Notes: generated by a model not told the origin, from the letters alone. Numbered from the stretch's first letter, positions 12,739 to 56,647 are shown. The stretch is 64,000 nucleotides of DNA from Selaginella moellendorffii (GCF_000143415.4 NW_003314283.1:630752-694751); one strand, 5' to 3'. Translations and numbers: made by a program.

Positions 12739-13658
12739 TGTAGCGCACGTGGTTTTGACCCTTTATCCTATGGTGATTTACCATAGGATAACACCACGAA
12801 GCGGAACCTAAACCCTCTTTGTGCCACGTGACAGATGCCACGTGTCATATGCCACGTGTCCATAAGAACCCGAGGTTCAGGGCCTTGGGCCACTGAACAA
12901 AGGAACAGTGCCAAACTCCCAAGCATGGAGCCAAGGAGTGACGGAACCGAACCACGGAGCAACTCCCAAGCATAAAGCCCAAGGAGCGAAGGGACAGGAG
13001 CCCAGAGCGACTTGGAACAGTCCTAGAGTAACCAGCATCCCAATGCCAGGACTAGCATGCAAAACGGAGCCAAACGGAGTCTGGCGCTATTTCGGCATAC
13101 CGGTGGCCTAACGCGAGGACATGGGTACTCCACCAACTAGCATGGAATGGAGCTTGGGCTTAGACCCAAGCCAAACGCAGAACAAGGACAGGCATGCAAG
13201 CGGGAGCTAAACTATGCCTCAGGTTGGTCGGCCATGCCCGACCTACCCACTATCCCTACTATACATTTGGAACCCCCCACAGCCCCCCCCCCCTTGAGGA
13301 ACACACGCTTTGGGCTTTCACCCCAAGCCTCCCTTAGTATCAGGAGTTAGTCTCTGGGACAAGCTCGAAACTTACTAAATATGGAATGTCCTTAAATTGC
13401 GAATTTGGACACGGGACGAACACCATTGTGTTCAGGACAATCTCTACATTCCGTAGATATACCAAATAAGCAAATCTAGACACTTTCCATAAATAGCATT
13501 TGGGACCGAAATGAGACTAACATAAAGGGCATGATAGCGAGGGTGTTTGGCAGACACGGTAAGCTATCATGTAGCGATATTGAGGGACCAATCTCAATAC
13601 GCGAGGGTTCTTGTCAAGCCAGTGCAAGACAGAGCAAAAGAGAACTAAAAAGCCAGGC

Positions 13659-14328
13659 TGTAGCGCATGTGATCATGGGATGAGATTTGGATATACTGTC
13701 ACCGTGGATCCTTGGAACCTTGGGGGATAAATAGGGATAAAATAGCCACTAAGGGCTCTCTTATCAAGCAATTGCCCCTTTTCCAGTTGGCTTAAGGGGA
13801 GAGAGATAAGGTGCACTACAGTTGGTATCGGAGCAAATGGCACAGGTTCGATTCCCATTGTATATTTATTAAAAATATAATATACCCTTGAGCAAGGTAT
13901 ATTCCTACCCCTAAATTTGAAATCGTACATATTGAGCATCTATGCGTACGTCCTTCCTCTTGTGTGGTGTATCCACGGACGAAGGTATCCACCGTGGGAC
14001 TGCAGTACAGGTGGATGACTAGTTGCCTCACATGGAATAGCTGGTCTACACAATGGAAGGATTGGTAGATTGAGTGTGGAAATGGAGGACATAATAAATA
14101 GTCAATGAGGACATTGACATCTCTAAAGGGGGGGTGAGTGTAGCGCATGTGATCATGAGATGAGATTTGGATATACTGTCACCGTGGATCCTTGGAACCT
14201 TAGGGGATACCGTGGATCCTTGGAACCTTAGGGGATAAATGGGGATAAAATAGCCACTAAGGGCTCTCTCATCAAGCAATTGCCCCTTTTCCAGTTGGCT
14301 TAAGGGGAGAGAGATAAGGTGCGCTACA
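13659..14328 (+). mobile_element. TRIM E inserted in the LTR of D
   Basis: TSD CAGGC. Terminal repeats 13659-13820 and 14139-14328, the second with a 28-bp internal duplication. PBS TGGTATCGGAGC, PPT AAAGGGGGGG, non-coding interior. Confidence 0.92.
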
Positions 14329-14899
14329 CAGGCCAAGTATGCTTGGCTGAATAGACACTTAGGAATTCCGTCCTTGTGCTCATCCGGCCAAGTACAGATG
14401 CAAAGTCCAATTTACTAACACTTGAACAAGAGGGGCTGATAAAAGGAACCAGCAATAAAGCTCTATTTCGTTAAAGTGGGAATTGTCATTATCCCACTTA
14501 TAAAATAAGGTTTCCAAACCTTTATATAGTATATAAATATAACAAAATTCAACTGCATTGAGGCACATGCCATTTTATTTTAAACAAGGAAATGTCTACT
14601 CAATCACTTCTCCTCCCCCTGCCACTGCTTCACCTCTCTCTTCTCCTTGTCATCGTCGTCCAATTTCTTTCCATCCTTTTAATATTGGCTCAGTTGCTCC
14701 GAGTCTAGGTGGAGCCCAAGTCCCCATTCAATCTTTACTTTCCCCTTATTAATAAAACAACTTCGTAGACTTCCAATAACATGCTGTAACACTTCTAGTA
14801 TAATGCAAATCCTCTCAAAGAATTGTCTTTTAATATTAATACAATGGCATGGAACCCCATGCCATAATAAGTTACATTTTTAAATAAATACATGCCATC

Positions 14900-15760
14900 T
14901 CAGACTGTTATTTTTTGCCTCCAACGCCTATACAATAATCTTGGAATTTCATCACTCTCCACACTATCAGGATTTAAACCCAATAGTAATGCCATCTCTT
15001 CTCTAATACGTCCACGCTCATGTTCAGTGGTCGAAGAACCCATCCGGTTGAGCAGATTATGGAGATGCGGATAGTGCTTGGCTAGAAAATATACATGCCA
15101 TAAATGATGACTGGTGTCTGTCCGATCAAATGGCTTCTGATATACCGTTCCATCTGCCATTTGGTTGATTTCTGCAGCCACCTCCTGGACTGGCCAGTTC
15201 TCTATCACCATCGCTCCAAGCCGTTCTGCAAGGTCCCCCAGAACATACGATTTCTTCTCCCTAGTTTCCATACTGCAAGAGATGGGGTGCACTGTATATG
15301 TGTGCGTATTCGCTACAGTTTTAATCGGCGAGTCATCGATGATGAGGATTTCACTTGACCTAGCAGTCCGGTTCATCACTACAGCCTCTGGCTTGACGAA
15401 GATGGGCTTGCTACCCCTCACATGGACCATAGTCAAGCAATCCTCCTGCGTTAGGAGAAAGTCAAATGGTAATATTACTCGCGTCTGATCGTGCATCATC
15501 TGTAGCAACGTTAATGCATTGTGGCGCATCATGGATGTCCAAACTCCCAATTGCAAATTGAACCCGGCCCTTTGTTTTAAGTGTCGCATGGTCATTATTA
15601 GATCCCGCAGTTTCTCCCGTGTGATTAATGTGAATCTGTCTCTTTTGACCAACTTGCGACCGCAGGCTTTGGAGGGTGCAGTGACATTCGAGGACGAGCC
15701 ACGCTCATGGGAGAAAAGGACACCGTTCAGATAAAAAATGATACAGTACCTTCGCCGTGA
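14900..15760 (-). CDS. FCP1/NIF-like HAD phosphatase-fold exon (cargo of the Sola-like element)
   Basis: IIFYLNGVL (DLNG-type motif I with Asp replaced by Tyr), LGVWTS, TQEDC...KPIFVK and ILIIDDSPIK. It is preceded by a pyrimidine-rich acceptor CATTTCAG. Confidence 0.65.
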   Translation of the reverse strand, partial: SRRRYCIIFYLNGVLFSHERGSSSNVTAPSKACGRKLVKRDRFTLITREKLRDLIMTMRHLKQRAGFNLQLGVWTSMMRHNALTLLQMMHDQTRVILPFDFLLTQEDCLTMVHVRGSKPIFVKPEAVVMNRTARSSEILIIDDSPIKTVANTHTYTVHPISCSMETREKKSYVLGDLAERLGAMVIENWPVQEVAAEINQMADGTVYQKPFDRTDTSHHLWHVYFLAKHYPHLHNLLNRMGSSTTEHERGRIREEMALLLGLNPDSVESDEIPRLLYRRWRQKITV

Positions 15761-16194
15761 CTCTGAAATGAAATGCGTCAGCATAAAAAATGGTACAAGT
15801 CAATTTTACCATCTACAATATTAGCGAATGGTGCTCCCGATGGTCGTTCAGAGGGTTTTGGTCGAGGAAACGTGAAGGGCGGAAATACTCTCCTCTACAA
15901 TGTGGGGTGTGGCGTGTGGGCACATGCCATTTCAGCTGTAGACTCTGGTACAACTGGCTCAACAGTGGCATGGGGTGGTTCCGATGGCGTGTGATCACAC
16001 GCCATTTCAGCTGGTGCCTCCGTTGGCAAAGTGGACATGACCGAACAGGAAGCAGGGGCGGTGTAGGGAGGTTCCAACGGCGCGTAGTCAGACGATTGGG
16101 CATACGTTGAGTCCGTTGGAAATGAGGATACGACTGTCAGGAATCCCCCAATTCTTGCCACATTCCTGACTCTTGCCGGATTCCTGACCTGCAG

Positions 16195-16312
16195 ACCACA
16201 TTCCTGATTCTCGAGACACTTCCCTATTCCTGACTCTCGAGACACTTCCATATTCCTGACTCTCGAGACACTTCCCTATTCCTGACTCTCGAGACACTTC
16301 CCGATTCCTGAG
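16195..16312 (+). repeat. 26-bp tandem repeat in the LTR of A
   Basis: (ACACTTCC[C/A]TATTCCTGACTCTCGAG)n; one unit fewer in the 3' LTR (~29565-29655). Confidence 0.85.
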
Positions 16313-17069
16313 TCTTGAGCCATATTCCTGATGATGATGTGGCGCCTCCTCGACCTCAGCTATATTTACGCCGTCCTCAATCCAAGAGTGGTGGAGCTTC
16401 ATCAACCTATAGTATATATAGGTTAGCCTTGTTCCATTTCTCCACAATCTGAATCAACACTAGTCTAAGGCTTGTTCTTTGTTTTCACTAGCTTTTTCTC
16501 TTTGTCTTTAGCATTTTCCAGTCTTGATCTTGTTGGGGGTCTTGATAGTTTGATTCAGATTGTGGTTTTTTTGCTTTTCTTTTAGCTCGTTTTGATTATT
16601 TGATTGCCTTTGTCTTTTTCCCCTTTCTTTTCTCTTGCCAATGGAGTCTCCAAGCCATCTTGATTTCTTTGCTGAAGTCCTTGCAAAAATCCAGTATGAG
16701 AATACCGAGCTGAAGGCGACCCTTCTTCGCATGCAGCAGGAGCTTGCTTCACTTTCGGCTCAAGGATCCAGCAAAGTTCCTGAACCGAAGGTGAGTTTCC
16801 CGGCGAAATTTTCAGGCAAGCGTTCAGAGCTTCGTGGATTTTTGAACCAAATGGAGCTGATCTTTGCACTTCAACATCGGCGGTACCCCACTCCCGAGTC
16901 TCAAATCGGCGCGATTGGGACGTTGCTCGAGGGTGCAGCTTTGTCATGGTTTTCTCCTCTTCTGGAGAAGAGCATGAAAGGGGTCTGTAAGGAACCAACT
17001 CGCCGAGGTGTCGTAGGCTAAGGGAACCCCGAAAGCATGACCAAAATGACAAAGAGTTCATCGGATGGG

Positions 17070-17340
17070 ACCAAGTCAAAGATCGAGTCCAAGACCGACT
17101 CTAGGACCGAGTTCGAGATAGAGTCCGGAATCGAGTCCAAGACCGACTCGGGGACCGAGTTCGAGTCCGAGTTCGAGACCGAGTTCGAGACGGAGTCCGA
17201 GATCCGAAATCGGGTCCGAGACCGAGTCCGAAGTCGAGTCCGAGGTCGGGCCCGAGATCGGGTCCGAGATCGAGTCCGCGATCGAGTCCGAGACCGAATC
17301 CGAAGTCGGATCTGAAATCGGATCCGAGATCGAGCCAGAG
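17070..17340 (+). repeat. Degenerate hexamer array (GAGTCC/GAGACC/GAGTTC) in the LTR of B; copy at ~23453-23723
   Basis: Directly visible; the source of spurious RDRV/ESE ORFs. Confidence 0.85.
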
Positions 17341-18192
17341 ACTAAGTCCAAATACTAATACGGGTCAAGGGGTGAAAGCCCAAAGCGTGCGTCCCCCAGG
17401 GGGGGGGGGCTGCAGGGGGTTCCAAAAGTATAGTAGGGATAGTGAGGTCCAGGAACCAGTTTTGAAGGGACTCTCCAGTTGGGCTTCCAAACCGACTTGA
17501 GGTTGGGACTGGGACTAAGGGGCCTTGGGTGGGAGTGAGCATGGACTTGGCTGGTGCCGGAGGGGCCATCCAAGGAAGTGCTCAAGAGCAGCTCCCACTC
17601 CCGAAAGGGAAACCGATTGCGGTGCTCCCGGCTCATGTGGAGTGGTGCCCCACTTGAGTACCATGCGGCTCATTGGTCCTCGCCCTTCCTAGGGGCTTGG
17701 GCCTTCCTTCGGGATGGAAGTGGGGGGCGAGAGGTACCCATGCCGGGCCGTTAGGCCACGGTGTTTCGCCCCGGCGTCCCGAAGCAAGTGTTGCACTCAA
17801 GACTTGGGATTTAGAGGGTCCCATGATCAAGTCTTGTGGTACCAAGGGATGTTAGGAACCTGGAAGCTTGGTGTGCTTGGCTGCTTGTGCTTGCGGGGAG
17901 TGTAGCCGAACCTTAAGTCCAGTCTAACCCGGGGAGGGGGATTGGGAGTGATTTGGGAATCCGTGGAAGGATGGCTAACACTCCGTTGCTCGTGCAGTGA
18001 GTAGCTGAAACCAAGTAGGAGCTGGTACCATAGGCGAGAACCTTGGCAAGGGAACTTAGCAAAAGCCAAGGCAGTGTTGGACGGATAGACGAGGTAAGCT
18101 GGCAAATTGGAAAGGAAAAATTTGTGGCTTACAATTTGGTATCGGAGCCTTTATCTCAGTTCTAGCGAAGGATAGAGGCGGATTGCTGGGAG

Positions 18193-21100
18193 ATGGCAAG
18201 GGCAGGGCGTAAGCGAACCCAGGCGGAGACGGAACCTCCGCCGGAGCTGGAGCCTCCGGTCGAACAAGAGGCTATGGATGAGGAATCCTTGCATGAGGAG
18301 GACTCTAGTGAGGAAACTTCCAAACAGGAGTCCGGTGGCGAGGTTCGGTCGTCCAAGGCTCGATTGGACGTGCTAGAAGGACAGTTGGCACAAACCAATG
18401 CCCTGCTGGAAACTCTCGTACGCAAGCTAAAGCGTGACGAGAGGCGGAAGAAAAAGAAAAAGACTGCGGATGCTGGCAGCGCAGAAGGTGCGGATCTTTC
18501 GGCCGGGACTGAGGCAAAACCAGACAAGGTCGAACAGACCGAAGTGGAATCAGTCCCTCAGGCAGTTCCCAAGTACAAACCAAAACCCCCACCGGTGTTC
18601 AAGGGAGTGAACGACTATAAGGTTGTGGAGGATTGGTTTTACGATATGGAGGACTACTTCCGAGCGTTGCGGTTACCGAGCTCGGAGAAGGTCCCATGTG
18701 CAAAACCATACTTGGCAGATAATGCCAAGTCTTGGTGGAGAACAACGGAGGCCAACGAAGGACCGGTGGCCACCTGGGACATGATGAAGGCGAGGATCCG
18801 CGCGACATACGTTCCTCCGAATGCCACTCTGCATCTGAGAGATGAGTTGAGTAGGCTGAAGCAGACTGGAACCATCCAGGAATATGTGAATGGGTTCATG
18901 GCAAAGAGGATACTTGTCACGGACATGGGGGATATGGATGCGTTCCATGCCTTTATATCAGGTTTGCAAACCTGGGCTCGCGGTGAGGTGATGCGCTGGA
19001 ACCCGACCAACTACAAGGAAGCGTTGGATGCGGCCATCAAGGTGCATTTCAACGATAACCTGCGAAAGGGGAACACGACGGGGTCGGGATCCACGTTTCA
19101 CAAAGGGGCCAAACCGAGGGGAACATATAGCAAGGGGAAATTCAAGAAGAGTTTCTCTAAGAATGAGTCCTCGGGGTTCCGGAAAGGCAAAGCCGGTGGC
19201 CAGCGAGCGAGTACGTGGGGAAGTCAAGCGAAAAAAGACAAACCCACGGATAAGAAGGTCAAGTCGTATAGCAGCGTGGGCAACAACGTATGCTACAACT
19301 GCGGCGAAGCGGGACACTTCTCGAGGGAATGTCCCTACCCGAAGAAGGCCAGAGCCAATATGGCCATCAAGTCGGGTGAAGTCCAAACTGAGGTATGTGA
19401 TCCAGTCCCCAACTCAAAGTTACTCATTACACGAGCAACTTTGGTAGAGAGTCGTTCGCGACATCTACTAGCCCTCCGAGGGAAGCTCGGAGGTAGCTTT
19501 GTTAAGATCCTTATTGACACGGGTGCTTCGGATAATTTTGTGGCTGCAGACATAGTCCGGCAAGCCGGACTAACGGTGCAGCGGCTAGGCGAACCAAGGA
19601 CTATAGAGTTTGTTCAAGGTAGCCAAAGCACCGATGAGGTACTTCGACAAGCGAGAGTCGAAGTGGGGACATGGAAAGTGGACATGGATTTCACCGTCTT
19701 GGACATGGCGGGATTTGACGTGATCTTCGGAATGGATTGGTTTAATCGGTTCGTGGTAGCCCTACATGGACAAGGTAGGAACCTTGTGGTATTGGCGAAT
19801 GCCCAAGGAAGAAGATCTAGGGTGGAGGCCCAGGATCTAAAGGTAGGGCAAAGCAAGGCCAAAGAGTCATGCTTAAACCTGGTGTCCACGAGAGGACAAC
19901 TCACTAAAGGAACTAAGGCAGCCTTTTTGTGCTTACTCTCGGTGAAGAGTGACAAAAAGACAAGAACGGAAGAAGTACCTTTAGTGATCCAGCAGGTGCT
20001 GGACCAATTCCAGGATACGATGCCGGAGGAGCTACCGGCGGGGTTGCCCCCCGCACGACCGATAGAACATAAGATTGAGCTGGTCGAGGGTGCTGAGGCG
20101 GTGGTTCGTCCACCCTATCGATTGAACGAAAAAGAACTCAAGGAGCTCAAGAGCCAACTAGAGGAGTTGGTGGACAAAGGGTATGTTAGGTTGAGCAAGT
20201 CGCCGTATGGGGCGCCGGTGCTATTTGTGAAAAAGAAAGATGGATCTATGCGCATGTGCATAGACTACCGGTTGCTCAACAAGTATACCAAGAAGAACAA
20301 GTACCCTTTGCCAAGGATCGAGGACCTGTTCGATAGGTTGGGAAAGGCAAAATACTTCTCGAGGATTGACCTAAGGTCAGGATACTACCAGATCAGGGTA
20401 GCTGAGGAAGATGTCGAGAAGACAACCTGTCGAACGAGGTATGGGAGCTTTGAGTTTTTGGTGATGCCCTTTGGGCTGTGCAATGCGCCGGCAACGTTTT
20501 CGGCGTTGATGAACCACATCTTTGTACCCTATCTGGATCGCTTCGTGGTCGTCTATATTGACGACATCCTGATCTATAGCGAGACGCTAGAGGAGCATGC
20601 CGAACACTTGGCGAAGGTGTTTGAGAAACTAAGGGAACACAAACTGTATGCTAAAGAGAGCAAATGTGACTTTGCTCAACAAGAGGTAAAGTTTCTCGGG
20701 CATGTGGTGGGCCAGGACGGGCTCAAGGTGGACCCGGAGAAGGTCCAAGCGATCCAGGAATGGGAACGACCATCGAATGTACATGAGTTGAGGGCGTTCC
20801 TGGGGCTATGCAACTACTATCGAAAGTTTATCAGACACTATTCGAGAGTAGCCCTGCCCTTAACGGACCAAACAGGAAAAGGGAAGATGGTATGGACAGC
20901 GGAATGCGAGGCAGCATTCGTCCACCTCAAAGGGAAGTTGAGGAAGGCTCCGGTGTTGGCCTTACCAGACTTTGGTAAAGACTTTGAGGTAGACACGGAT
21001 GCTTCGGACTTTGCGTTGGGCGCAGTTTTGAAGCAAGACAACCATCCAGTAGCGTTCTTCTCGAAGAAGCTGGACAAGGCTCAACGGAAGTGGCCTGCCC

Positions 21101-22965
21101 ACGAGAAGGAATTGTTTGCGGTGGTCAAGGCGCTCAAGGAGTGGCGACACTACCTTGGGAGACACTTCAAGGTTTACACGGACAATGTGGCAACGAAACA
21201 CTTCTTGTCACAGCCCGACCTAAGGGGAAAACAAGGTCGGTGGGCCAATGCTTTGGCCGAGTTTGATTGCGAGATCCTGTACAAGCCTGGGAAGAGCAAC
21301 ATCGTGGCAGATGCGCTCAGTCGAAAAGCGAGCTTGAAGTTGGCGATATCTAGCGCGACAGCAACCTTTTGGGACGATGTGCGGACCGCATACGAGAGTG
21401 ATGGTCTAGCACAAGAAGTGTTGCTGAGGAATCTGGAGGCGCGGGAAGCTCACCAGAGAGGTGAGCTGCCAACGGAAGAGAAAACGGGCTATGCGGAACG
21501 CAACGGACTCATATATTACAAGCAAACGAGGGTGTATGTTCCAGAAGGGGAACTAAGGAAGGTAGCCTTGGAAGAGTGTCATGACGGACCTCTCGCGGGA
21601 CACGGCGGAGTGCCCAAGACGATGGGCTTACTCAAAAGGAAGTATCACTGGCCAGATATGGCTAAGGACGTCCAAGACTATGTAAAGACATGTCCAACAT
21701 GTCAGCAGGTCAAAGCCGTGACGAAGGCTAGTGGGGGCTTGTTGCAAAGCATCCCCATCCCAGATCGTCCGTGGAAATGTCTCACGATGGACTTCATCAC
21801 GGGACTAACCCCAAGCGAGGGGTTCGATGCGATATTCGTGGTGGTGGACCGATTTTCAAAGATGGCACATTTCATACCCACCACAACGGATGTGGATGCG
21901 GAAGGTGTGGCGAAGCTGTTCTTCGAACAAGTGGTTCGAGTGCGGGGAAGGCCGGAAGAGATTATCTCAGATCGAGATAAGATCTTCACCAGTAGGTTCT
22001 GGAGGACACTCCTAGAACAGTATCGCACCAAGTTGAAATTCAGCACGGCCTATCACCCACAGACAGGTAATGGGTATTGAGTCAAGATTGATGGCACTAA
22101 CACTTCTTGACAGACGGACAAACGGAAAGGGTGAATAGGCAGCTGGAGGATTATTTGCGATGCTATGTCTCGGGAGACCAGACTGACTGGGTAAGTCATT
22201 TGGGACTTGCGGAAATGTGTTATAACAACTCACCACATTCGAGCATCGGGGTGAGTCCATGGGAAGTCATCAATGGGCGAGCTATTGAAGGTCCTGTGGA
22301 ACTCGGCGTGGCCGAGTATCATGGAGAGTTACCCGCAGTGGAGGCATTCACGGCGGAAAGACTCAACATTTGGAATCTAGTGAGGGATTCCTTGGAACGG
22401 GCTCAACAAAGGCAAACTAAGTACGCGAACCAAAAGCGTCGAGATGTGGAGTTCCAAGCTGGGGAGAAGGTGTGGCTGAACACCAAGAACCTCAGGCTAC
22501 CAAGTGGGATCAGCCGGAAGTTGACCCAAAGGTAAAAATGCATGTATTCCTGTAAATGAATTGATCTTGAGTTCCTTAAGCAGGTTCGCGGGGCCTTACG
22601 AGATTGAGGCTCGAATCGGTAAAGTGGCTTACCGTCTTCGACTTCCTCGAGAGATGGGGAAGATGCATCCCGTGTTCCACGTGAACTTACTCAAGCCGTA
22701 TTTTGAGGATCCGCTTCGCAAGGACCAAGTAAGACCTTTACCTGAGGTTATCCAAGGGGAGGAGGAATACGAAGTCGAGGCCATCCTCAATGCGCGCAAG
22801 AGCAAGCGACAAGGACGCGAGGTGAGAGAGTTCCATGTGAAGTGGAAAGGATTTCCACACTGCGAAGCAACATGGGAACCGGAGGAGAACCTAGCGAACG
22901 CGCGAGATCTAGTGGAGGAATTTCTGCATGGCAGAACTCTATGTACTTATGCAAAGTTCAATTAA
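18193..22965 (+). CDS. Gag-Pol of B (gag, CCHC, PR, RT, RNaseH, IN, chromodomain); exons 18193-22066, 22114-22531, 22584-22965
   Basis: Motifs [28 protein letters not shown] and HHCC. Removing two GT-AG introns restores AYHPQTDGQTER and KLTQRFAGPY. Chromodomain EYEVEAIL...VKWKGF...TWEP. Confidence 0.88.
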
Positions 22966-24516
22966 AAGTATCAATTTGAGAAGTTGAGCAATGGCATATG
23001 TTGGGACCCGAAGGCGCGCCGAAGGTAAGCTAATTAGCATGGGTTAGCTAGGTCGACCAGGCGTAGGGAGCTACGCCCGACTCCCTGCGGGGATGTCGAA
23101 TCCGTAGACGTATTCTACGGAGGTTGGGTTTGAGTCCCAACCCCCTAGTAAAGCAAGGCTGGGTTCAAGTCCCGACCCCATACTAGGGCGTGGTGAGGGG
23201 TGGAGTATAGGGACACCTATATTCCGTTGTCATGAGCTTTTGGCCGGGGAGGCTAACTTAGGCACACCGCTAAGTGGGGGGATGCCCCCGGAGACATGGT
23301 CAACAAGTCGTAGGATAAAAAAGAGACGTTCGATGTGGGCATCGAACTTCTTCTATGGGTGGTGGAGTTGTAAGGAACCAACTCGCCGAGGTGTCGTAGG
23401 CTAAGGGAACCCCGAAAGCATGACCAAAATGACAAAGAGTTCATCGGATGGGACCAAGTCAAAGATCGAGTCCAAGACCGACTCTAGGACCGAGTTCGAG
23501 ATAGAGTCCGGAATCGAGTCCAAGACCGACTCGGGGACCGAGTTCGAGTCCGAGTTCGAGACCGAGTTCGAGACGGAGTCCGAGATCCGAAATCGGGTCC
23601 GAGACCGAGTCCGAAGTCGAGTCCGAGGTCGGGCCCGAGATCGGGTCCGAGATCGAGTCCGCGATCGAGTCCGAGACCGAATCCGAAGTCGGATCTGAAA
23701 TCGGATCCGAGATCGAGCCAGAGACTAAGTCCAAATACTAATACGGGTCAAGGGGTGAAAGCCCAAAGCGTGCGTCCCCCAGGGGGGGGGGGCTGCAGGG
23801 GGTTCCAAAAGTATAGTAGGGATAGTGAGGTCCAGGAACCAGTTTTGAAGGGACTCTCCAGTTGGGCTTCCAAACCGACTTGAGGTTGGGACTGGGACTA
23901 AGGGGCCTTGGGTGGGAGTGAGCATGGACTTGGCTGGTGCCGGAGGGGCCATCCAAGGAAGTGCTCAAGAGCAGCTCCCACTCCCGAAAGGGAAACCGAT
24001 TGCGGTGCTCCCGGCTCATGTGGAGTGGTGCCCCACTTGAGTACCATGCGGCTCATTGGTCCTCGCCCTTCCTAGGGGCTTGGGCCTTCCTTCGGGATGG
24101 AAGTGGGGGGCGAGAGGTACCCATACCGGGCCGTTAGGCCACGGTGTTTCGCCCCGGCGTCCCGAAGCAAGTGTTGCACTCAAGACTTGGGATTTAGAGG
24201 GTCCCATGATCAAGTCTTGTGGTACCAAGGGATGTTAGGAACCTGGAAGCTTGGTGTGCTTGGCTGCTTGTGCTTGCGGGGAGTGTAGCCGAACCTTAAG
24301 TCTAGTCTAACCCGGGGAGGGGGATTGGGAGTGATTTGGGAATCCGTGGAAGGATGGCTAACACTCCGTTGCTCGTGCAGTGAGTAGCTGAAACCAAGTA
24401 GGAGCTGGTACCATAGGCGAGAACCTTGGCAAGGGAACTTAGCAAAAGCCAAGGCAGTGTTGGACGGATAGACGAGGTAAGCTGGCAAATTGGAAAGGAA
24501 AAATTTGTGGCTTACA

Positions 24517-27477
24517 AATAAGCCATTTAAGAACTCGAACTCGTCAAATCGCCGGCAGTCGGGAGTCACAGGGTGTCCAGCCTGAAGATGGGGGAAAATG
24601 TCGCTGGCGAGATCATCAGATTGAAGATCGTTTCTGATGGCATCCATCAAGGAGGAGTCCTGAGGGGCCAGGGAAATTGCCATAACCTGAAGCCGATCAG
24701 GACCGAGGATAATCTGATCCTGTTGATCGAAGGCAGGATTACCAGGCCTGAGACTGAGATAGGAGCGCCTTGAAAGAGCATCAAGAAGGCCTTGAAGCTT
24801 TCCAGGTCTGTACTTGATAACAAAGTCAAACCGACTCAGGAATTGTGCCCACCTTGCTTGACGACGGCTTAAAACTCGAGAAGTGGCAAAGTACTCGAGA
24901 TTTTTGTGATCCGTCCAGACTGTTGTTTGATGACTTGCCCCCTCCAAGAAACGACGCCACTCTCCAAAGGAATCCACGATGGCAAGGAGCTCCTTGTCGT
25001 GGATTTCATAATTGATCTCCGCAGGCTGGAATTTCCGAGAATGGAAAGCGACCGGATGAAGTTCTTGATCCGCTCCGAGTTGAGACAGCATAGCACCGAT
25101 GGCAAAGTCGGAGGCGTCAGCATCGATGAAGAAAGGTTGTGAGGAATCAGCATGGATCAAAACGGGAGCAGAACTGAAGGCTGCCTTGAGAGTGTCGAAG
25201 GCGTGCTAGGCAGCAGTAGACCAAGAGAAGGGGACATCCTTGCGAGTGAGATGCGTGAGAGGAAGAACAATGTCAGAGTAGTGATCAATGAATTTGCGGT
25301 AGAAGTTGGCGAAGCCAAGGAAAACCTGAACGTCCGACATTGATTGTGGAGGCTCCCACTCGAGAATAGTCTTGACTTTGGCAGGATCCATCGTGATACC
25401 CTCAGGAGTGACAACATACCCAAGGAACTCCACAGACTGCTGATCGAAGGAACATTTCTCAAGCTTCGCGTATAGGCCGTGTTCTCGCAACTTCGCCAGC
25501 ACCTTGCGTACATGTTTGTCGTGCTCCTCTTGAGTTCTTGAGTAGATGAGGATGTCATCGAGGTAGACAATAACCATCTGATCAAGAAACTCCCGAAAGA
25601 CGTCGTTCGCCATGTGTTGGAAAACTGCTGGAGCATTTGTCAAGCCAAATGGCATGACAGTGTACTTGAAGTGGCCATAGCGGGTTCGGAACGCAGTCTT
25701 CCATTCATCACCAGGCCGGATCCGGATCAGGTTGTATGCGCCACGGAGGTCAATCTTGGTGAAGAAGCGGGCACCGCCGAGATGTTCCAACAGGTCCGAG
25801 ATCAGGGGCAGCGGATAACGGTTCCGAACAGTCACCTTGTTCAAACCTCGGTAATCGATGACTAGCCGCAAACTCCCATCCTTCTTCTTGACAAAGAAGA
25901 CAGGCACTCCAGCCGGGGACTGCGAATGCTGAATGAACCCTGAGGCAAGGTTCTCATCCACGTACTCTTTGAGGGCCTTAAGCTCGGACGGGGATAACCC
26001 GTAGATAGGCCCCCACGGAGGCGACGCTCCTTCCTGTAAATCAATGGGACAGTCATAAGGCCGATGAGCAGGCAGTACACTAGCTTTTTTCTTGTCAAAC
26101 ACATCCCCAAAATCATGATACTTCTCAGGAAGACTGACAGGAAAAACATGCAAAGCAAAAAGAAAAATAGGTTCTTCATGAAGGAGTTCTTGCATAGTGA
26201 TTGTGGAGATAGGAGGAGGTGTACGACTAAATGGAATGATGAGACGAGGATACTGTCCAATGTAAGATGGAAGAGAGGAAAAAGAAGAGGGTGAAAACTT
26301 TGTAGAGTCAGGAACAGAACCCCGATTTGAGTTTAGGGAACTTTTCCTGATTCGGACTCGATGAACAGCAGGGGAAGCCGTGGGAGATGGTGATGTGGGA
26401 GAGATGAGCTGTAAATCCTTCCAACAAATCTGAGGCTGATGTAGCTGGAACCAAGGAAGACCGAGCACCACAGAGGAGGACTTGCTGTTGATGATGTTGA
26501 AGGCGATATCGGTGACGGTGGACCCAATGTGTACTCGAACGGGCAACATTTCCCTAAGTCCAGAAGATGGAGACACAAAATGCCCACCGATGCCTTCAAC
26601 CCTCAGATCCTGTATGGTAGGAGAAAGAGGAACGTGATGTCGGGCAGCAAAGTCCGTGTCCATGAAGCAGGAAGTTGCACCCGAGTCCAGTAGCGCCAAA
26701 GCCTTGAGTCCTGATTGTCCGGTGAAAGAAAGGAGACATGGGACGCGGAAGTTGCGGGAATTGGTGGTGGCTTTGATGAAAGGTGGTGAGGAGCTTGATA
26801 AGGAAGAAAAGTGATTTTTATTCAGGGAGTCCAAACAGACAGCTCCTACTCTGTTTGGACAGGGTCGTTTCCCGACTGCAAAAGAGGTGGACTTTGAGGC
26901 AGAGTGAACTCGAGCAATCGGGGAGGCTTCTTGGGACACACAGCTGCTTTGTGATTAGGATCAGCACAGTAGAGGCAAAGATTATGAGATATTCGACGTT
27001 GCCTCTCAGTAGGACTCAACTTCCCTCTAATGAGTCGGGGAGTACCAGAAATATCCATCGGGACCGGAGCAGTAGGTTCAGGACTATGCCCCGAAGACTC
27101 AAGCTGGGATTCCTGAGTCTGGGACGGAAAAACAGCGGCGCGGCGACTTTCCTGACGACGTTCAAAGAGACGATTGTCACATCGAACAGCTTTGTTGATG
27201 GCGTCCGACAGGTCCTTGGGATCCTCCATAGTGAGCAATAAATCCTTGACACCATTGTTGAGGCCGAAACGAAATTGGTCAATCAGGGCCCGCTCATCCC
27301 ACTGAGTGTCCAAGGCAAGGAGTTGGAACTCTGCAGCGTAGATCGAGGCAGGACGAGACCCCTGAGAGAGACGTCTCATCTTTGTGGTAGCAGCCCGAAC
27401 CCGATCCGTCTCGCCAAAACATGCTTCGAGCTTCTCTTTGAACAATTGAAGATCCATCAGCTCCGGAACCACGACCC
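24517..27477 (-). pseudogene. Inverted central gag-pol segment of A
   Basis: Gag zinc knuckle CLYCADPNHKAAVC, PR LLDSGA, RT YLDD and RNaseH DASD...DHKNL. Both ends join in frame to the + strand parts of A (KSMKG-VVVPEL; LNGLLYRGEQLYVP). Confidence 0.92.
26829..26873 (-). promoter_or_regulatory. -1 ribosomal frameshift signal at the gag/pol overlap of A
   Basis: Slippery G GGA AAC in the gag frame, a 6-nt spacer, then an 11-bp stem GTCCAAACAGA/TCTGTTTGGAC. The pol ORF lies in the -1 frame. Confidence 0.8.
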
Positions 27478-28070
27478 TGTAAGCAACCAAAGGGAACGAC
27501 TCGAGAGACGATCCATGGGGTTCAAATATAGAGGGAAAGGGCCCATGAACAAGAGTGCACCCCCTTTTCCAATCGGTTAAGGGTCTTGGGATATTTGGGG
27601 TTAAGCGTCCTTGGGCTTGAATAGTACTGGGCTGGGTGACCTCTCGGGAAGTCCAAACTCAGGAGCTTACATTTGGTATCAGAGCGGTCTTGGGTCCGAC
27701 TCTGTTGGTTGGCTAGGGGAATCACACCACATGTTGATTGACATCTGGCTGGTCCAGTTTGCTCCCGCTGGGCTCGACCCGAGGGGTAGGGTGTCAAGAG
27801 AGCGAGGCTCTCGGGAGAGCTGCGGCTCTCAGCTTCCGTTCACGAGGGCGTGAACTTGCAAGGAAGCGTGGTGGATTGTAAGCAACCAAAGGGAACGACT
27901 CGAGAGACGATCCATGGGGTTCAAATATAGAGGGAAAGGGCCCATGAACAAGAGTGCACCCCCTTTTCCAATCGGTTAAGGGTCTTGGGATATTTGGGGT
28001 TAAGCGTCCTTGGGCTTGAATAGTACTGGGCTGGGTGACCTCTCGGGAAGTCCAAACTCAGGAGCTTACA
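27478..28070 (+). mobile_element. Cassandra-type TRIM C (5S rRNA-like segment in its LTRs)
   Basis: Apparently identical 194-bp LTRs at 27478-27671 and 27877-28070, PBS TGGTATCAGAGC, 205-bp interior. A 5S internal-promoter-like segment lies at 27600-27654 and 27999-28053. Confidence 0.9.
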
Positions 28071-29890
28071 TTATTGTACCGTGGGGAGCAGCTTTACGTT
28101 CCTGAAGGTGATGCTCGAAGGTTGGTCCTAATGGCGTGCCACGATAGCCCGACTGCTGGTCACTTCGGCATTGCGAAAACCTATGAGCTAGTTGCACGGG
28201 ACTTTTGGTGGCCTCACATGGACGACTACATCAAAGCTTTTGTTACCTCCTGTGACACTTGCGCCCGGAATAAAGTACCTCGTCACCTTCCTTCAGGTTT
28301 GCTTCGTTCCCTTCCGGTCCCTTTAGGTCCTTGGGAATCCATCTCCATGGATTTCTTGAGTGATCTTCCGAGTTCTGGAGGCTTCAACAGCATTTTAGTC
28401 GTGGTGGATCGCTTCACAAAGATGGCGCACTTCTTGCCATGTACCAAGGAGTTTTCGGGCGAGGACATGGCAAAACTAGTATTCAGGGAAATTTTCTGAC
28501 TTCATGGGATTCCTACAGATGTGGTTTCGGATCGGGGGCCTCAGTTCATCTCTCATTTCTGGCAACGGTTTTTGCAGCTGCTTGGAGTGAAGGCCAACCT
28601 CTCTTCGGCGTATCATCCTCAAACTGATGGGCAGTCCGAGCGAACGATTCAGACGTTGGAACAATTCTTGAGGTGCTTCATCAACTATCATCAGGATAAC
28701 TGGTTCGATATCCTTCCCCTTGCTGAGTTCTCCTATAACAACTCTATTCACTCCTCTCTTCGAATTTCCCCCTTCTTTGCAAACTCTGGCCGAAATCCCC
28801 AATTCAATCTCTCACTTCCTTCTCCATCTGAATCCTCTCATTCAAATCCCTACTCTGAGGCATTTATCTCCAACCTCCAAGAAATTCACAACTCCATCTC
28901 CTTCCACCTCCATCGTGCTCAGGAATCTCACAAAACATTTGCCAATGTCCATCGTTAGGATTGTCCCCCTTACAATATCGGGGATAAAGTTTGGCTCCTC
29001 AGGCGAAATATCTCCACCACCAGGCCCTGTCCAAAACTTGATTTCAAACGCCTCGGTCCTTTCCCTATCACTGCCATCATTAATCCTGTCACTTATCGCC
29101 TTGCACTTCCCTCCTCATATCAAATTCACCCCGTTTTCCATTCCTCTCTCCTTGAGCCTTATATTCCCAGTCCTATTCCCAATCGGGTCATTCCTCCACC
29201 TCCACCAGTGCAGCTCGAGGATGGGTCTGAGTACGAGGTTCAGGACATCCTTGATTCCAAGATTTCACGGTCTAAACTCTACTATCTGGTGGACTGGAAG
29301 GGTTACGGGCCTGAAGAACGCACTTGGGAACCTGCAGACAACCTGATTCATTCTCCTGACCTTGTTCAGGACTTCCACCGCCGCTATCCTAGTCGTCTCA
29401 GTCCTCATTCTTTTTCTCCATCTCCCATCCCTCGCCGCTCATCTCATCCTCCTCGTCGTTCTCATTCACATCCTCGTTCCACTCGTTCTTGAGGAGGGGG
29501 TGCTGTCAGGAATCCCCCAATTCTTGCCACATTCCTGACTCTTGCCGGATTCCTAACCTGCAGACCACATTCCTGATTCTCGAGACACTTCCATATTCCT
29601 GACTTTCGAGACACTTCCCTATTCCTGACTCTCAAGACACTTCCCGATTCCTGAGTCTTGAGCCATATTCCTGATGATGATGTGATGCCTCCTCGACCTC
29701 AGCTATATTTACGCCGTCCTCGATCCAAGAGTGGTGGAGCTTCATCAACCTATAGTATATATAGGTTAGCCTTGTTCCATTTCTCCACAATCTGAATCAA
29801 CACTAGTCTAAGGCTTGTTCTTTGTTTTCACTAGCTTTTTCTCTTTGTCTTTAGCATTTTCCAGTCTTGATCTTGTTGGGGGTCTTGACA

Positions 29891-37276: not shown

Positions 37277-40200
37277 ATGGCCTTCAGAGTTGGGGAAAAG
37301 GTTTACATTTTGAATGGTGGGAAGAGAGTTGCAAAAGGGACCCTTGTGTCTATGGATCGGAACTTTGTTATACACTGTCAAAGGCTTGGGGAAGGCAATG
37401 CTGCTGTATCAGTAGAGACTATCTTCGATGGGAATGTGGTCGCTATTGAACGAGGAGAGATGGTCGTCGGAGTAAATGTTGTTGTTGCCTTGAAAAATTC
37501 TCAGAAGAAAGCAGATGTTGGGGACAGCGCAAGTGCGACGCATGTTCCCTCCGTGGATCTTAAGAACCGTGCTACATGGATTCAGGCGAAGGTGTTTCTA
37601 AACAACCCCGAGGGGGAGGTGGTAGCTGAGGGCTTAGCCACAGTTGTCGATCCAAGAGATGCAGTTGCTAATCAAGAATTGGGCTGGGATGATATTGGAG
37701 TTGCGATTTTAGAGGTTGTTGACACAGAAGAAAACAGTTTGACTATTGGAAGCATTGTGCGGTGGAAATTGAGGCACTTAGTGTTTGAGAATGTGAAGGA
37801 TTCACAATCAAACACCACTACAACTGATGACAGAACATCTCTTCATGGGAAAAGAAAGTACACCTTCCTAAAGCGCAGCCAAAGGGATCTGAGCAACGAA
37901 CCGAAAAGGCAGAAAATGGCGATGGAGGTTCGAATGGTCTTGACAGTTGCTTGTTGCAAGAGGAGGTGCTGTCAACATGCTGATTGGGATGCTATTGAAG
38001 AGGAGAGAGCAAGATACAAGACATTGTCCTAGAAGGCAGCTCGCAATTTTGTGTATAAGGCATTACGGTCATCTGTTGATGCTTCAAAACATCAGGTGGG
38101 GGGCATGGTCTTCCAGAGGGGTTTGGTCTGCATGAAGGCATGGAGAATCATTTATGGAGTCCCTCGAACCACATTCTACAGAATCAAAACTGAGTTCAAG
38201 GAACAAAGGGTTCAACAGGCAGTCCATGGGAACAACGGTACGCACAAAACCAGGGGTCATGTTGTATATGGAGAGGCAATCTTCAAGATGTTTGTCGAGA
38301 CATGTAGCGAGCAGCAACCACATAAAACCCGCCTCTTGGAAGATGGAACACGAGACACCTAACGAGTTCTCCCTTCCATGTATACCAACGGGGCCATATT
38401 GGAAGATGTGAATCGGGAACTCCAGAGTAATGGCTACAGGAAGCTGAGCCAATCTAGATTTAGTAGATTGTGGAGCAACAGGTTCAGGGATGTGAGTATA
38501 GGAAAGTACTCCAGCTTTTCAAAGTGTGACGAGTGCACTACTATCAAAATGGCTTTGTCGAAGAATTCTTGCAGCGCTCAAGAGCGAGAGACGTTGGTTA
38601 GAAGGCGGCTCAACCACAACATCGAGTAGAGAAGCTGCAAGACTGCATATTATCATAACAGGATTCTCTCCATGGAGAGACCTGACTCTTACCTCTGCAT
38701 CATCCACGACAAAATGGACCAGAAAAAGACATGCTTATCTCGACTCAATCCTGCCCCCAAGGCAATCTCTTCATCCATGCAGCTGCCTGTGTCTCTGTTT
38801 GGCATAATCGCTCATGGGCATGGTGCCCAGAACTATGGAACTTCTTTGTACCTCTATGGGGTGGCGGGGGTGCAAACATGATGATTGCGTCCCTAGCAAA
38901 ACACTTAAGGTCTCTGCAAAGTGCGCAGACTGAGCTGAACGGCCAACCCTTGCATAAGGCCCTTGTCGATCGAACCCCATACAGGGTTCAGCTAGAGGAG
39001 GAGCAAAGGCTTGCAGTATCGCGTGGGGCCCCATGCCATCCCAGTGAATATGTTGGCCGTCAGATTGTAGGGTTATCACGTGAGGCCTCATGCCATTCCG
39101 ACGAGGCTGGTCGCTCGGTGAATGCACAGCCTCATCCAAACGAAGTAGAATCTCAAGGAAGTTCTTGCGGCCGATGTGGCCTTCCACCCCATCTTCTGCT
39201 CCAAACAGACAATGCTGGTAGTGAGAACAAAAACATGTACGTCTTCGTGTACTTGGCGATGCTTGTTGCCAAAGGCATATTTGAAACGGTTACACTTGGC
39301 TTTCTCATGGTTGGGCACTCATGAAGACGTCGATACCATGTTCAGTCACCTGGCAGAGTCCCTCCGGCGATCCAATGTCCTCACCCTCCCACAACTCTAC
39401 GATGAATTCCAAAATTGCATCAAAGGCACTGTTGAAGCTGCACTTCTGACAGAGGTTCCAGACTTTAAGGGGTTTGTAAGAGGCTACATCAGGGACGGAT
39501 CCGAAACGCTGATTGGCCACTCCAAGCCTCTTCAGTTTCATTTCAGCATGTGTGACGGTGCTCCAGTGATGAGGTACAAGATGAGAGAATGGGACACAGT
39601 GTGGCTGCCAGTGGACGGCATTGAACTCTTCAAGAGAGATCCCATAACTGGGGAACCTATGATTCCTCAAGGTTCCCCACAGCCGATGCACCCGGATGGA
39701 CTCAAAGACCAGGAAAGTATAGTGGCCGGGATTAGACAGCATATTGCCTTCTGGAAGAGGGGGTTGGTGTTTGGTGGAGAATCTTATTTTCAGAGGTGCA
39801 AGCCTTTACTTGAATACTGGGAGAAGATTATATCTGCTATCCAAAATGGGCCGGTTGTATATGAAGAGTTGGAAGAGTCCTTTTGGCCAGAACCCAGAGC
39901 ACCAGATAGTAGCGGAACAATGTCCTCTGGAAATGCAGTGACAGATAACGATGTTGAGGATCACTATTGTGGGCCGAGGAACAAGAAGCCGGATTCAGCA
40001 TTCAATCCAGTACAGGTCTGCAAAGGAATAGTCGTGCTTGTCAGACCCAGTAATAAAAAACAAATGATATGGGTGGGGCGCTGCATCACTGATGCAGAGG
40101 AGGACGCAGAAACTAACTCCTTCAATGTAACTGTGGAGTGGTTCAAGCCAAGTTCTGGATATACGAAGGATTGCCTAGAAAAGAGATGGGTGCTGAATCC

Positions 40201-40342
40201 AAGGGATCCCAGCATGAGCATATCAGTGGATAATGTTGTGTATGGTTGGATGCGGAAGCAGAGTGCCACCATCACCTTGCCAGACCATGCAAGAGATGCA
40301 GCAAGAGCATTCATAACCCGGGTTCAAGGTGAGATTCATTAA
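37277..40342 (+). pseudogene. Sola-like DDD transposase with stops and frameshifts
   Basis: Cys/His motifs (CCKRRC, CMKAW..IYG, FSKCDEC). Catalytic-type motifs IIHDKMDQ, LLQTDNAGSENKN and FLMVGHxHEDVDTMFS. C-terminal VVLVRP...WVG...VEWF domain. Confidence 0.8.
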
Positions 40343-42104
40343 TATTCCTTTATTAAGTTTCTAATGTATTTTATTTCAAGATGAACAGTCCGAATCTGAA
40401 TCAGAGGAGGCGTGATGGCATGTGGCCTTACGCCATTCCTAGGTGAGATGTTACAAATAACAAGTATAAATTCTTAGTTGTTCTAGCAAATCTTACTTAA
40501 AGTTTAAGGTGAACAAGCCGAATATGAATTCATCGGATTGTTATAACAAATTGCGAGGTGATGGCATGAGGCGATACGCCATTTGAGAGTGGTAGCCATT
40601 CCTATATGAGGTGAGTGAAATATTTATTAGAAATACCTCATTCAATTGTGCACTTCTAAGTCTTGGTCCACTCAGTACTGTTTGCATGTTTTTATTTTAA
40701 TTCTTTCTCTAAAATGTTATTTAGCATGTGGCTTCATGCCATTGCTCTCCACAATCATGCATTGAATTTTTCTATCCTTGCATAATACTTCTCCATATAT
40801 ATAGCATGTGCGCACATGTGATATGGTTCATTAGGCCTGATATAGTGTGTGAGGTAAAACAAAGATGATGTGACATATGCATTTACCAATCACACGTGCA
40901 TAAATCTAATAATATGGCGTATGGCCCATATTAATGGCACATAAACCCATATTGTGGGCTTACATGCTTTATGTACCATCATTCCCTTGCAGCGTGTGTG
41001 TTGGTTTCCTTTTATAATACAACGAACTCCATATTTTAGGGTGAAGAGCGTTCTCATGGCAAGCACAAAATCTGTAAGTGAGGCAGAAAAGGAGACGGAG
41101 AAGGAGATAGGTGAAGATGTAGAATATATAAGTCTTCCAAACTCCCCGTACTATACTCCAGGTGATCATTTTTCTGAACAAACGGCAACATTAACAACTA
41201 TCGAGAACGCCCCAGTAACGTCAGAGACAACAATCCAAAGCAAAACAACTGACCCGGAGAAGGATGATAGTACCGCTGAGAGTACCAAAAAGGAGGTGTC
41301 CACTAGCGCTTAGGCTTATAATGGCGTGTGCCCTCATGCCATTTACTTGATCACCAAATACCTTTTTCCCTTTGCACTAGTATATCTTAATACCAGTCTG
41401 AGAAATAGAATGGCATATGCCCTCAGGCCTTTTACTAAATCACCTTTGAAAGAAATGCAAGCCTCTATGTCGTAAAAAAAAGGTACTAGAGAAATTCTTT
41501 AATAATATGAATGTTATTTAGTTTCATGAAAATACACTAAGGGTCAAATGAGTTAAATGACTTCTCCAGACTAACAATGCCTCTTGCTACACCTTCACAA
41601 TTAGATTCATTAGAAAAAGATAACATTGAATAATATCTAAATGTTCTCACCATTAAGTTATATGTCTGGCTAATAGGAATGACGTTCATCTTGGAAAGCT
41701 CACCACACGCTCAATGAACAAACAAATAGTGTGTGCGCGCATGCCATCGCTCTTCTTTAGCTTCAGATTCGGCTTGTTCACCTTGACAATGAGATTTATT
41801 ATACAACCAGATGGACACAGTCTGGACATAAAGTCACCGCGCTAGTCACCATGCCCCAGATATATCTAGCCCCTGGACAAAAAACATATAATTTCACGTC
41901 ATTTTCAAATACTTGAAAATTTGTACCTAGTCCCATTTTACTGAATAAATCCCACTTTAACGAAATAGAGCTTAATACCGACCTCCTGCCATCGTGGCAG
42001 TAAGGTAAGAGTGTCCGTAAGGACTGGTCGACAGGTAACTTTCGATACCCGAAGTCACATGCACGACACTCTCCCCCCCTAGGGAAGATCGACGTCCTCG
42101 TCGA

Positions 42105-42464
42105 TATGAGACACAAAATCCCTAGGCCCCAAAGTGGAGCCGGAAAGGGTGCCACGTGGTAGTGGCCGAAGCGAAAGCCAAACGAGCATAACACGTTTGG
42201 ACTAAAAGCTCCGACTTGGAAGGTCGAAAGCGGGAGTGGAACTCCCAACAAAGTGCTCGAGGAGCAAGCACGAGACAACCAATAAGAAAGGCTCCAAAAA
42301 GGGACCCAAAAAGGACCAACACATGACACATGGAAGTGTCCGAGATGGAGTCCGAGGCGGACCCGAGTTGGAGTCCGAGATAGACCCGAGATGGAGTCCG
42401 AGATGGACTGAGACGGAGTCCGAGATGGACCCGAGATGGAGTCTGAGGTCGAGACCGAGACCGG

Positions 42465-42499
<35 letters not shown>

Positions 42500-56645: not shown

Positions 56646-56647
56646 TA

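Follow-up and report, generated by a model that had tools for sequence, protein, structure and literature searches.

Which autonomous retrotransposon supplies the proteins that a non-coding Cassandra element needs in order to move? The question is raised by a 64,000-nucleotide stretch of Selaginella moellendorffii DNA (GCF_000143415.4, NW_003314283.1:630752-694751; hereafter the window), in which a miniature terminal-repeat retrotransposon (TRIM), here called element C, and a chromovirus, element B, both lie inside an older chromovirus, element A (Table 1). An original prediction, made from the sequence of the window, had described C as a Cassandra-like TRIM bearing 5S ribosomal RNA (rRNA) sequence, had proposed that B-type chromoviruses mobilize it, and had added that the helper of Cassandra is not firmly established. 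On the last point the literature agrees and names none: for the protein donor of Cassandra 'we have no indication' (PMC10886601), and a second study speaks of '(unknown) autonomous retrotransposon partners' (PMC7215508). We find that C is very probably a Cassandra-type TRIM and a new member of that lineage. The overall explanation that fits the locus best, and towards which we lean slightly, is a Cassandra-type C that uses B-type proteins in trans and whose entry together with B may have been a single event.

Element C carries a 5S-like block in each long terminal repeat

C has the complete anatomy of a TRIM, with two long terminal repeats (LTRs), a site for primer binding (PBS) of the initiator methionine tRNA (iMet) type, and an internal region that terminates in AAGGAAGCGTGGTGGAT, abutting the 3' LTR. 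Its PBS, TGGTATCAGAGC, is the consensus given for Cassandra (PMC7215508). Within the internal region we detected no protein match or coding signal, and no run of four T residues (T4); the open reading frames (ORFs) that touch C are part of the flanking element A. This copy is missing a direct target-site duplication (TSD), its 5-bp flanks being the reverse complements of those of B.

The predicted likeness of each LTR to the A-box to C-box region of plant 5S rRNA was borne out. A 55-nt string from this block occurs exactly twice in the window (27600-27654 and 27999-28053; shuffled sequences give an expectation of 0), and the Rfam 5S rRNA model RF00001 matches the two LTRs (27581-27668 and 27980-28067) at 30.3 bits each (E=4.8e-4 in a 951-nt search), a match that emerges only under E-value reporting, not at the gathering threshold. 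The alignment reaches both ends of the model, with about 32 positions (helix II/III) left out, and its 5' part falls on a degenerate repeat of the A-box region. Convincing homology extends from the A-box through the 18-nt spacer and the C-box to GGGAAGTCC (27654). A scan of the window for the published Cassandra box pattern (A-box, 18 nt, C-box) gave matches in the LTRs of C and nowhere else, with the 18-nt spacing exact, and 100 shuffles gave none.

Several results weigh against assigning C to Cassandra. The RF00001 score of 30.3 is below the Rfam gathering score of 38, and nothing in the window reaches that threshold as 5S; the window holds no host 5S gene to compare. Each box of C has one mismatch to the published Cassandra consensus, and for this reason C does not fit the exact search string of Kalendar 2020 (RGTTAAGYRHGY / RRRATRGGTRACY). 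The 5S-like RNA of C folds no better than shuffled sequence (z=-0.07); because its stability does not exceed that of shuffles we claim no 5S-like fold, and the conserved part of the block looks like a DNA promoter rather than an rRNA fold. The Kalendar 2020 string is a search heuristic and not a definition of Cassandra, and the misfit does not disqualify C, because a C-box of Cassandra from Anthemideae, GGCCTGGGTG (PMC10853983), would fail it too.

C matches Cassandra elements in architecture

For calibration, a relaxed form of the published query was used in one scan of metagenome contigs, which returned two plant contigs, L001 (grass-like; LTR TGTAACACCC...GGACGTTACA) and L002 (LTR TGTTGGAAGG...TTTCAACA), and no further copies of the C family. 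The elements on both contigs fit the original published Cassandra boxes exactly. With RF00001, L002 scored 28.8 and 20.8 bits and L001 had no match, leaving C the best of the three; a score below threshold is thus normal for Cassandra. Over a 57-nt stretch of the internal control region (ICR), C is 63-79% identical to the comparators, which are 63-69% identical to each other. LTR lengths across the three are 179, 189 and 194 nt (C the longest), every LTR has a T4 run upstream of the A-box (at 35 nt in C, and at 33 and 42 nt in the comparators), and the PBS lies within a few nucleotides of the LTR end in all three. C, like L001, begins with TGTAA and ends with CAGGA-NN-TTACA, and the T4 of both lies in the context TGCA..CTTTTCC; the remainder of the two LTRs did not align. 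Elsewhere on L001 (5621-5819), a MIR1435-type inverted-repeat hairpin scores 83 bits, below its gathering score of 94, and fits a Poaceae origin of that contig.

Because its TRIM anatomy, 5S ICR, iMet PBS and LTR architecture match those of two bona fide Cassandra elements, we file C in the Cassandra lineage under the structural definition of PMC10853983, in keeping with the original prediction. Like Cassandra in general (PMC7215508; PMC10853983), which is non-coding, 563-860 bp long and has short LTRs, C has a block of an A-box, an intermediate element (IE) and a C-box with 18-nt spacing in both LTRs, the exact iMet PBS and a T4 tract upstream of the A-box; as described for fern Cassandra, the block lies near the PBS. 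C departs from the Cassandra norm in its variant boxes (an A-box with GTCC instead of the GYGC type, and C-box GGGCTGGGTG instead of AGGATGGGTG), in the extra degenerate A-box copy, in an ICR nearer the LTR end (63-91% of the LTR, compared with a range of 25-75% in 81 angiosperm-dominated Cassandra families) and in its host, which seems to belong neither to the ferns nor to the seed plants. Gao et al. (PMC4717578) report 5S sequences in no TRIM family other than Cassandra and list no Cassandra for Selaginella, and in our literature search we found no paper connecting the two.

The closest designs outside Cassandra are Ajax, a 5S-bearing TRIM of nemerteans, and Helenus, a set of tRNA-bearing TRIMs that includes Helenus-1_SMo of S. 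moellendorffii (PMC10886601). Like C, both have the 'TRIMp3' design, with a module for RNA polymerase III (pol III) in the LTRs, a retained PBS and polypurine tract (PPT), 5-bp TSDs (in C, 5-bp flanks reciprocal with those of B) and no long LTR homology to a helper. Ajax is an animal family of independent origin, and Helenus has a tRNA-type promoter, whereas C has a plant 5S ICR and a plant iMet PBS.

An older copy of the C family, C2, is 28% diverged and has no recognizable TSD; standing beside C with its identical LTRs, it indicates that the family is old in this genome yet recently active. Among the 79 differences of C2, 64 are C>T or G>A (81%), a spectrum that resembles heavy deamination of methylated cytosines (similar to repeat-induced point mutation (RIP), in a plant). 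Fungal RIP was rejected as the source of this decay: the homologues of a glyoxal/aldehyde oxidase (GLOX) gene in the window are all from land plants, and the PBS is of the plant iMet type.

A proposed pol III life cycle for C

The life cycle that we infer for C, from pol III transcription with its start and stop sites to the identity of the helper and a joint integration, would begin with the binding of TFIIIA and TFIIIC to the ICR of the 5' LTR and the recruitment of pol III, by analogy with Cassandra. Transcription, with a predicted start some 50 bp upstream of the A-box (~27550) and 20-26 bp downstream of the TATA-like AAATATAG, would cross the PBS and the 205-bp internal region and would stop at the T4 of the 3' LTR (27964-27967), which pol III could reach because the internal region is free of T4. 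As a candidate terminator, this tract would define a short R region, with about 16-19 nt repeated at both RNA ends; the estimate agrees with the 18-bp terminal duplication reported in Cassandra (PMC10886601, citing Kalendar 2008). tRNA-iMet would prime reverse transcription at TGGTATCAGAGC, the tract ending in GTGGTGGA would prime the plus strand, and an integrase recognizing TGTAAG...CTTACA ends would insert the cDNA with a 5-bp duplication. All proteins would come in trans, most plausibly from a B-type chromovirus. What speaks against this scheme is a T4 about 15 nt past the predicted start in the 5' LTR, where read-through would be needed; the T4 layout of L001 and L002 is the same.

Two other readings of C have to be weighed. 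If the 5S-like block were a decayed relic, C would be transcribed by pol II from the TATA-like AAATATAG, as an ordinary TRIM is, and the RF00001 score below threshold, the mismatch in each box and the missing RNA structural signal in the block would follow; the TATA-like motif also lies ~47-54 nt from the LTR start, near the position reported for promoter-less Cassandra-like TRIMs (PMC10853983). However, this copy with its identical LTRs has preserved the A-box, the 18-nt spacing and the C-box, the score of its block is on a par with functional-type Cassandra, and no T4 run in the internal region stands in the way of pol III. An upstream TATA-like element is used by plant 5S genes as well, which also counts against pol II, and we regard transcription of C from a relic of this kind as highly doubtful. 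Less easily set aside, though still unlikely in our view, is that C is unrelated by descent to the Cassandra of seed plants and ferns and is a local, B-dependent TRIM that captured a 5S module independently. Ajax shows that such convergence occurs (PMC10886601), multiple origins of Cassandra are openly discussed (PMC10853983), the LTRs of C, L001 and L002 are not convincingly alignable outside the ICR, PBS and tips, and the duplicated A-box-like stretch of C is not seen in the comparators. Against capture, what C and the grass-like L001 have in common (LTR length, ICR position, T4 distance and context, and both LTR ends) exceeds the promoter module.

Element B as a candidate helper

B is a chromovirus (Ty3/gypsy) by its order of gag, protease (PR), reverse transcriptase (RT), RNase H (RH) and integrase (IN) and by the chromodomain at the integrase C-terminus; its exons were searched separately and the pieces of A were compared piece by piece, neither being joined. 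It is the only intact RT-bearing (autonomous LTR) element within the window, and the best annotated relative of its polyprotein is 42% identical. Two mini-introns interrupt the integrase gene of B. The first holds a CTAAC branch-like motif, and its removal would restore the conserved AYHPQT/DGQTERVN with the catalytic glutamate; the second splits SH3_Tf2-1, with profile position 24 as the first residue of the last exon. Unspliced B RNA would encode an integrase that ends before the catalytic E and has no chromodomain. Element A has no introns at these places, and an intron-regulated integrase in a young chromovirus is unusual.

The cis signals that the proteins of a helper read (tips, PBS type and PPT) are shared by B and C, a likeness that is necessary but not sufficient for a helper relation. 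The 5' tips, TGTAAGGAACCAA in B and TGTAAGCAACCAA in C, are identical at 12 of 13 positions, the 5' tip of C matches the reverse complement of the 3' tip of B at 11 of 13, and the 3' ends read GCTTACA in both (7/7). Both elements have GTGGTGGA 1-2 nt before the 3' LTR, an unusual tract in that it is not purely purine. Element A has neither the tips nor the PBS of C. The shared termini, iMet PBS type, tract and TSD relation on which the original prediction relied are all present at the locus.

The case for B has to be set against results that do not favour it. The two PBSs, although both of iMet type, are 1 base apart, and the iMet PBS does not discriminate among helpers because four families in the window carry it (B, C, G and the TRIM T2). 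In a blastn comparison of B with C, the likeness was confined to the ~13 terminal bases, the PBS type and the 8-mer, and neither the LTRs nor the interiors matched otherwise, so that the pair lacks the LTR homology by which TRIM/helper pairs are recognized (PMC4717578), and the case comes from one locus. When packaging or dimerization signals common to the interiors of C and B were sought, the PBS alone aligned, and scores against A, T2 and G were no different in kind. In the pairs of Gao et al. 2016 (PMC4717578), for example SmoRetroS4/SmoLTRA4 of Selaginella (Ty3-gypsy), a small non-coding LTR element is likewise matched with Ty3/gypsy, but the LTRs are of equal size and 79-98% identical (104 bp for Smo4), whereas those of B and C measure 1148 and 194 bp and agree at the tips only. 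TRIMs driven by pol III should not share LTRs with a pol II-driven helper, according to PMC10886601. A second pair in the window, T2 and the large element G, has 14/15 and 10/10 terminal bases and a G-rich PPT in common and nothing else. TRIMs in this genome thus seem to copy just the signals that helper proteins read, as PMC10886601 predicts for pol III-driven TRIMs. Two PBS variants coexist: B and T2 carry ...ATCGGAGC, whereas C and G carry ...ATCAGAG (8-nt cores at 13823, 18137, 27674 and 47648). Either iMet tRNA may itself come in two variants in the host, or one mismatch may be tolerated.

A better match of C to another family, F, which was also thought to end in GCTTACA, had been named as grounds for abandoning B, but F could not be identified as an LTR element. 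Its B-LTR-like stretch (42335-42644) is merely the 12-nt tandem-repeat motif also present in B, and its end ...TCGCTTACA at 43568 is accompanied by neither a PBS nor a partner LTR, nor by any pol in the vicinity. Apart from B and C, GCTTACA ends occur in the window only in C2 and in this fragment (43556-43568), which is without PBS or coding region and is no rival helper because it lies inside the internal region of G. Of the proposal that B mobilizes C, then, the shared ends, the tract and the reciprocal TSDs stand, while a discriminating PBS and LTR or internal homology do not. On this evidence we give the B-type family an even chance of being the helper of C.

Reciprocal target-site copies flank B and C

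B sits in the gag of A and C in its integrase gene. Neither has a direct TSD: the flanks read GGGTC-B-AATAA and GACCC-C-TTATT, a reciprocity with chance odds of ~4^-10. Between the two elements lies a segment of A on the minus strand, whereas the start of the A gag is on the plus strand before B and the A integrase is on the plus strand after C. The gag frame ...LLEKSMKGV (to 16985) resumes as VVVPELMDL... (from 27475 downward, minus strand), and at the integrase join the frame ...FEFLNGL (the RNase H end of A, to 24519) resumes as LLYRGEQLYVPEG... (from 28071). Alignment of the B polyprotein breaks off at residue 1077 before this join and picks up at residue 1107 beyond it, and the gap matches 26 unaligned codons. 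Because the frames of A and the alignment to B continue across the joins, the ancestral order was A-left, GGGTC, middle, TTATT, A-right; B and C now occupy those two sites, and the middle segment has been flipped precisely to the base, taking along one copy of each TSD. LTR divergence of 2/1148 in B and 0/194 in C is consistent with a single age. The LTRs of A differ in that a 26-bp tandem repeat has an extra unit in the 5' LTR (16200-16319) relative to the 3' LTR (29565-29662) and that the 5' LTR ends CTTGATA, not CTTGACA.

This arrangement could have arisen in one step. Retroviral integrases in vitro pair the ends of two donor DNAs in one intasome and join them across one staggered cut. At this locus, an integrase would have paired both left ends at GGGTC and both right ends at TTATT, 3 kb away; joining of the cross-paired ends to the cut target would give the observed order, orientation, 5-bp duplications and inverted middle; joined the other way, the ends would yield a deletion and a circle. 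Unlike in the two-donor reactions, the donors here would be an autonomous element and the element parasitic on it, and a 3-kb inversion would mark the event. A literature search found no report of cross-paired integration as a natural genomic footprint of LTR retrotransposons. We propose tentatively, at somewhat less than an even chance, that B and C entered A in one cross-paired event. Slightly more tentative still is the step from there to a single pre-integration complex that held chromovirus and Cassandra-type cDNAs, which would make the locus a natural footprint of trans-mobilization.

The same junctions could have been reached by two ordinary insertions and a later inversion through the 7-bp inverted repeat GCTTACA/TGTAAGC, which would produce reciprocal TSDs without a scar and so argues against joint entry; taken with other routes of rearrangement, we consider this a toss-up. 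Such a history takes three events, all within the brief period after B arrived, and breaks that fall exactly on the tips of two elements. A fuller version grants that C is of Cassandra type but places its helper in another family outside the window (Copia or a TGTAAG-ended chromovirus), B and C having inserted independently into A, as heterochromatic DNA of the kind that chromodomain integrases favour, before the inversion. The 3' tip of B and the 5' tip of C are perfect 7-bp inverted repeats, recombination at which yields exactly the observed junctions, the likeness of B and C stops at the tips, and an iMet PBS is a generic trait; in pear, moreover, 11-30% of intact Cassandra copies are without TSDs, which has been attributed to recombination (PMC4079214). 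Yet two very young insertions 3 kb apart and a precise inversion would all have to fall within the time in which the B LTRs gained 2/1148 changes, a random inversion is unlikely to break to the base at two element tips, and the GTGGTGGA tract and the 12/13 tip match would be left as coincidence. We judge this version rather unlikely. A far more improbable possibility is that the inversion is an assembly error and that B and C carry normal TSDs in the real genome. The scaffold is of draft type (~2 Mb), and the B LTR, at 1.1 kb, is longer than a Sanger read; but the 2.96-kb segment is unique in the window, and mis-orientation needs flanking inverted repeats, of which the 3' LTR of B and the 5' LTR of C share only 7 bp.

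Other features of the window

A, B and C are hosted by a 27.5-kb insertion with terminal inverted repeats (TIRs), which also holds ORFs for DUF7869 (38731-40342) and a NIF-like protein (14900-15784). Two identities were rejected: G is not a 36-kb element, as the 27.5-kb element with 27-nt inverted ends sits inside its LTR, and the insertion is not GingerRoot, which has a 6-bp TSD and 100-150-bp TIRs. No pol was detected in the internal region of G. The B LTR contains ~20 copies of the 12-nt repeat GACCGAGTCCGA (17069-17341 and 23452-23724), and a related repeat lies inside G (42335-42644); a 110-nt module of the B LTR is 80-85% identical, in reverse, to part of the G LTR (13248-13357 and 48171-48285). 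LTRs of different families in the window appear to exchange modules.

Two Helitron-like copies (8181-11508 and 49659-53277), 71-74% mutually identical, encode PIF1 helicase, Helitron_like_N and Pif1_2B; the DNA around the first has a G+C content of only 30%. GLOX is the one clear host gene in the window whose relatives are informative. The GLOX protein is 52-61% identical to those of ferns, gymnosperms, a clubmoss and a moss, and in a single-gene tree it forms a long lone branch outside the clades of ferns, gymnosperms, angiosperms and moss. Judged from the sequence, the host would be a seedless land plant, perhaps a lycophyte. Records of the GLOX protein on two scaffolds of about 2 Mb suggest the assembly of two haplotypes. 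Upstream of the gene, in the region 55630-63875, lie repeated segments, 80-90% identical, that may include decayed GLOX copies.

Table 1 Positions of the elements, their parts and other features, counted from the first letter of the window
Feature	Position	Strand	Description
Element C, complete TRIM	27478-28070	+	593 bp: LTR, PBS, 205-bp non-coding internal region, PPT-like tract, LTR
C 5' LTR	27478-27671	+	194 bp; start TGTAAGCAACCAA, end GAGCTTACA
C 3' LTR	27877-28070	+	194 bp; 100% identical to 5' LTR
C PBS TGGTATCAGAGC	27674-27685	+	exact complement to 3' end of plant tRNA-iMet, 2 nt past LTR
C PPT-like tract	27860-27876	+	ends GTGGTGGA-T right before 3' LTR
T4 tract, sole one in C LTR	27565-27568 (3' LTR: 27964-27967)	+	35 nt upstream of A-box; candidate pol III terminator
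TATA-like AAATATAG	27524-27531	+	~20-26 bp upstream of start predicted (~27550) from A-box position; putative function
5S-derived ICR	27599-27654 (3' LTR: 27998-28053)	+	A-box 27599-27610, 18-nt spacer with IE, C-box 27629-27641, GGGAAGTCC tail
Degenerate second A-box-like copy	27575-27590	+	24 nt upstream of A-box; stretch aligned by cmscan to 5S helix I
C2, old internally deleted C-family copy	6923-7329	-	deletions in internal region and in 5S core of its 3' LTR
Element B, chromovirus, candidate helper	16986-24516	+	7.5 kb
B LTRs	16986-18133, 23369-24516	+	1148 bp; 2 differences, 99.8% identical
B PBS TGGTATCGGAGC	18137-18148	+	iMet-type
B gag-PR-RT-RH-IN ORF	18193-22080	+	1295 aa, with zinc knuckle; Pfam RVT_1, RT_RNaseH, Integrase_H2C2, rve
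B GT..AG mini-introns	22067-22113, 22532-22583	+	47 nt and 52 nt; interrupt integrase gene
B last exon	22584-22965	+	SH3_Tf2-1 and Chromo (E=2e-16)
B pre-LTR tract GTGGTGGA	23359-23366	+	just before 3' LTR
Element A, older chromovirus hosting B and C	16135-29890	+	TGTCAGG...CTTGACA ends, non-iMet PBS, 5-bp TSD ACGAC
A LTRs	16135-16547, 29504-29890	+	~98% identical
GGGTC	16981-16985	+	target-site copy left of B
TTATT	28071-28075	+	target-site copy right of C
Inverted A segment	24517-27477	-	2,961 bp between B and C; second part of gag, PR, RT, RH
Bounds of inverted segment	24517-24521 (AATAA), 27473-27477 (GACCC)		reverse complements of right TSD of C and left TSD of B
Element G	12739-14457 + 41974-42068, and 47662-48801	-	iMet PBS 47659-47648
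Large TIR insertion	14458-41973		27.5 kb, 27-nt TIRs, apparent 4-bp duplication AATA; splits G LTR
TRIM T2	13659-14328		~670 bp, PBS TGGTATCGGAGC, 5-bp TSD; inserted in LTR of G
GLOX gene	62532-63875		glyoxal/aldehyde oxidase; homologues land-plant only
CVNH ORF	4183-4746		cyanovirin-N homology; fits seedless plant
RibD_C-like ORF	3560-4150		

Implications for Cassandra and its helper

Cassandra elements are spread over the vascular plants and exploit the 5S pol III promoter, and nearly two decades of work have named no helper for them; this locus gives a concrete, testable candidate: an intact young chromovirus with the integrase-bound tips and the odd plus-strand primer tract of C. What the locus says about mobilization depends on how B and C came to lie together. 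An inversion after two separate insertions would tell nothing on mobilization beyond the shared tips. Joint integration, if true, would be direct evidence that B and C used the same integrase at the same moment, and with it the first case in which a genome points directly to the helper of a Cassandra-type element, here a Ty3/gypsy chromovirus. It would also be a way, not reported before, for LTR retrotransposons to produce small inversions, and reciprocal TSDs around an inversion are a structural signature that can be searched for genome-wide. As a member of the lineage, C appears to extend Cassandra to a plant outside ferns and seed plants, and so bears on whether Cassandra had a single origin in early vascular plants or more than one.

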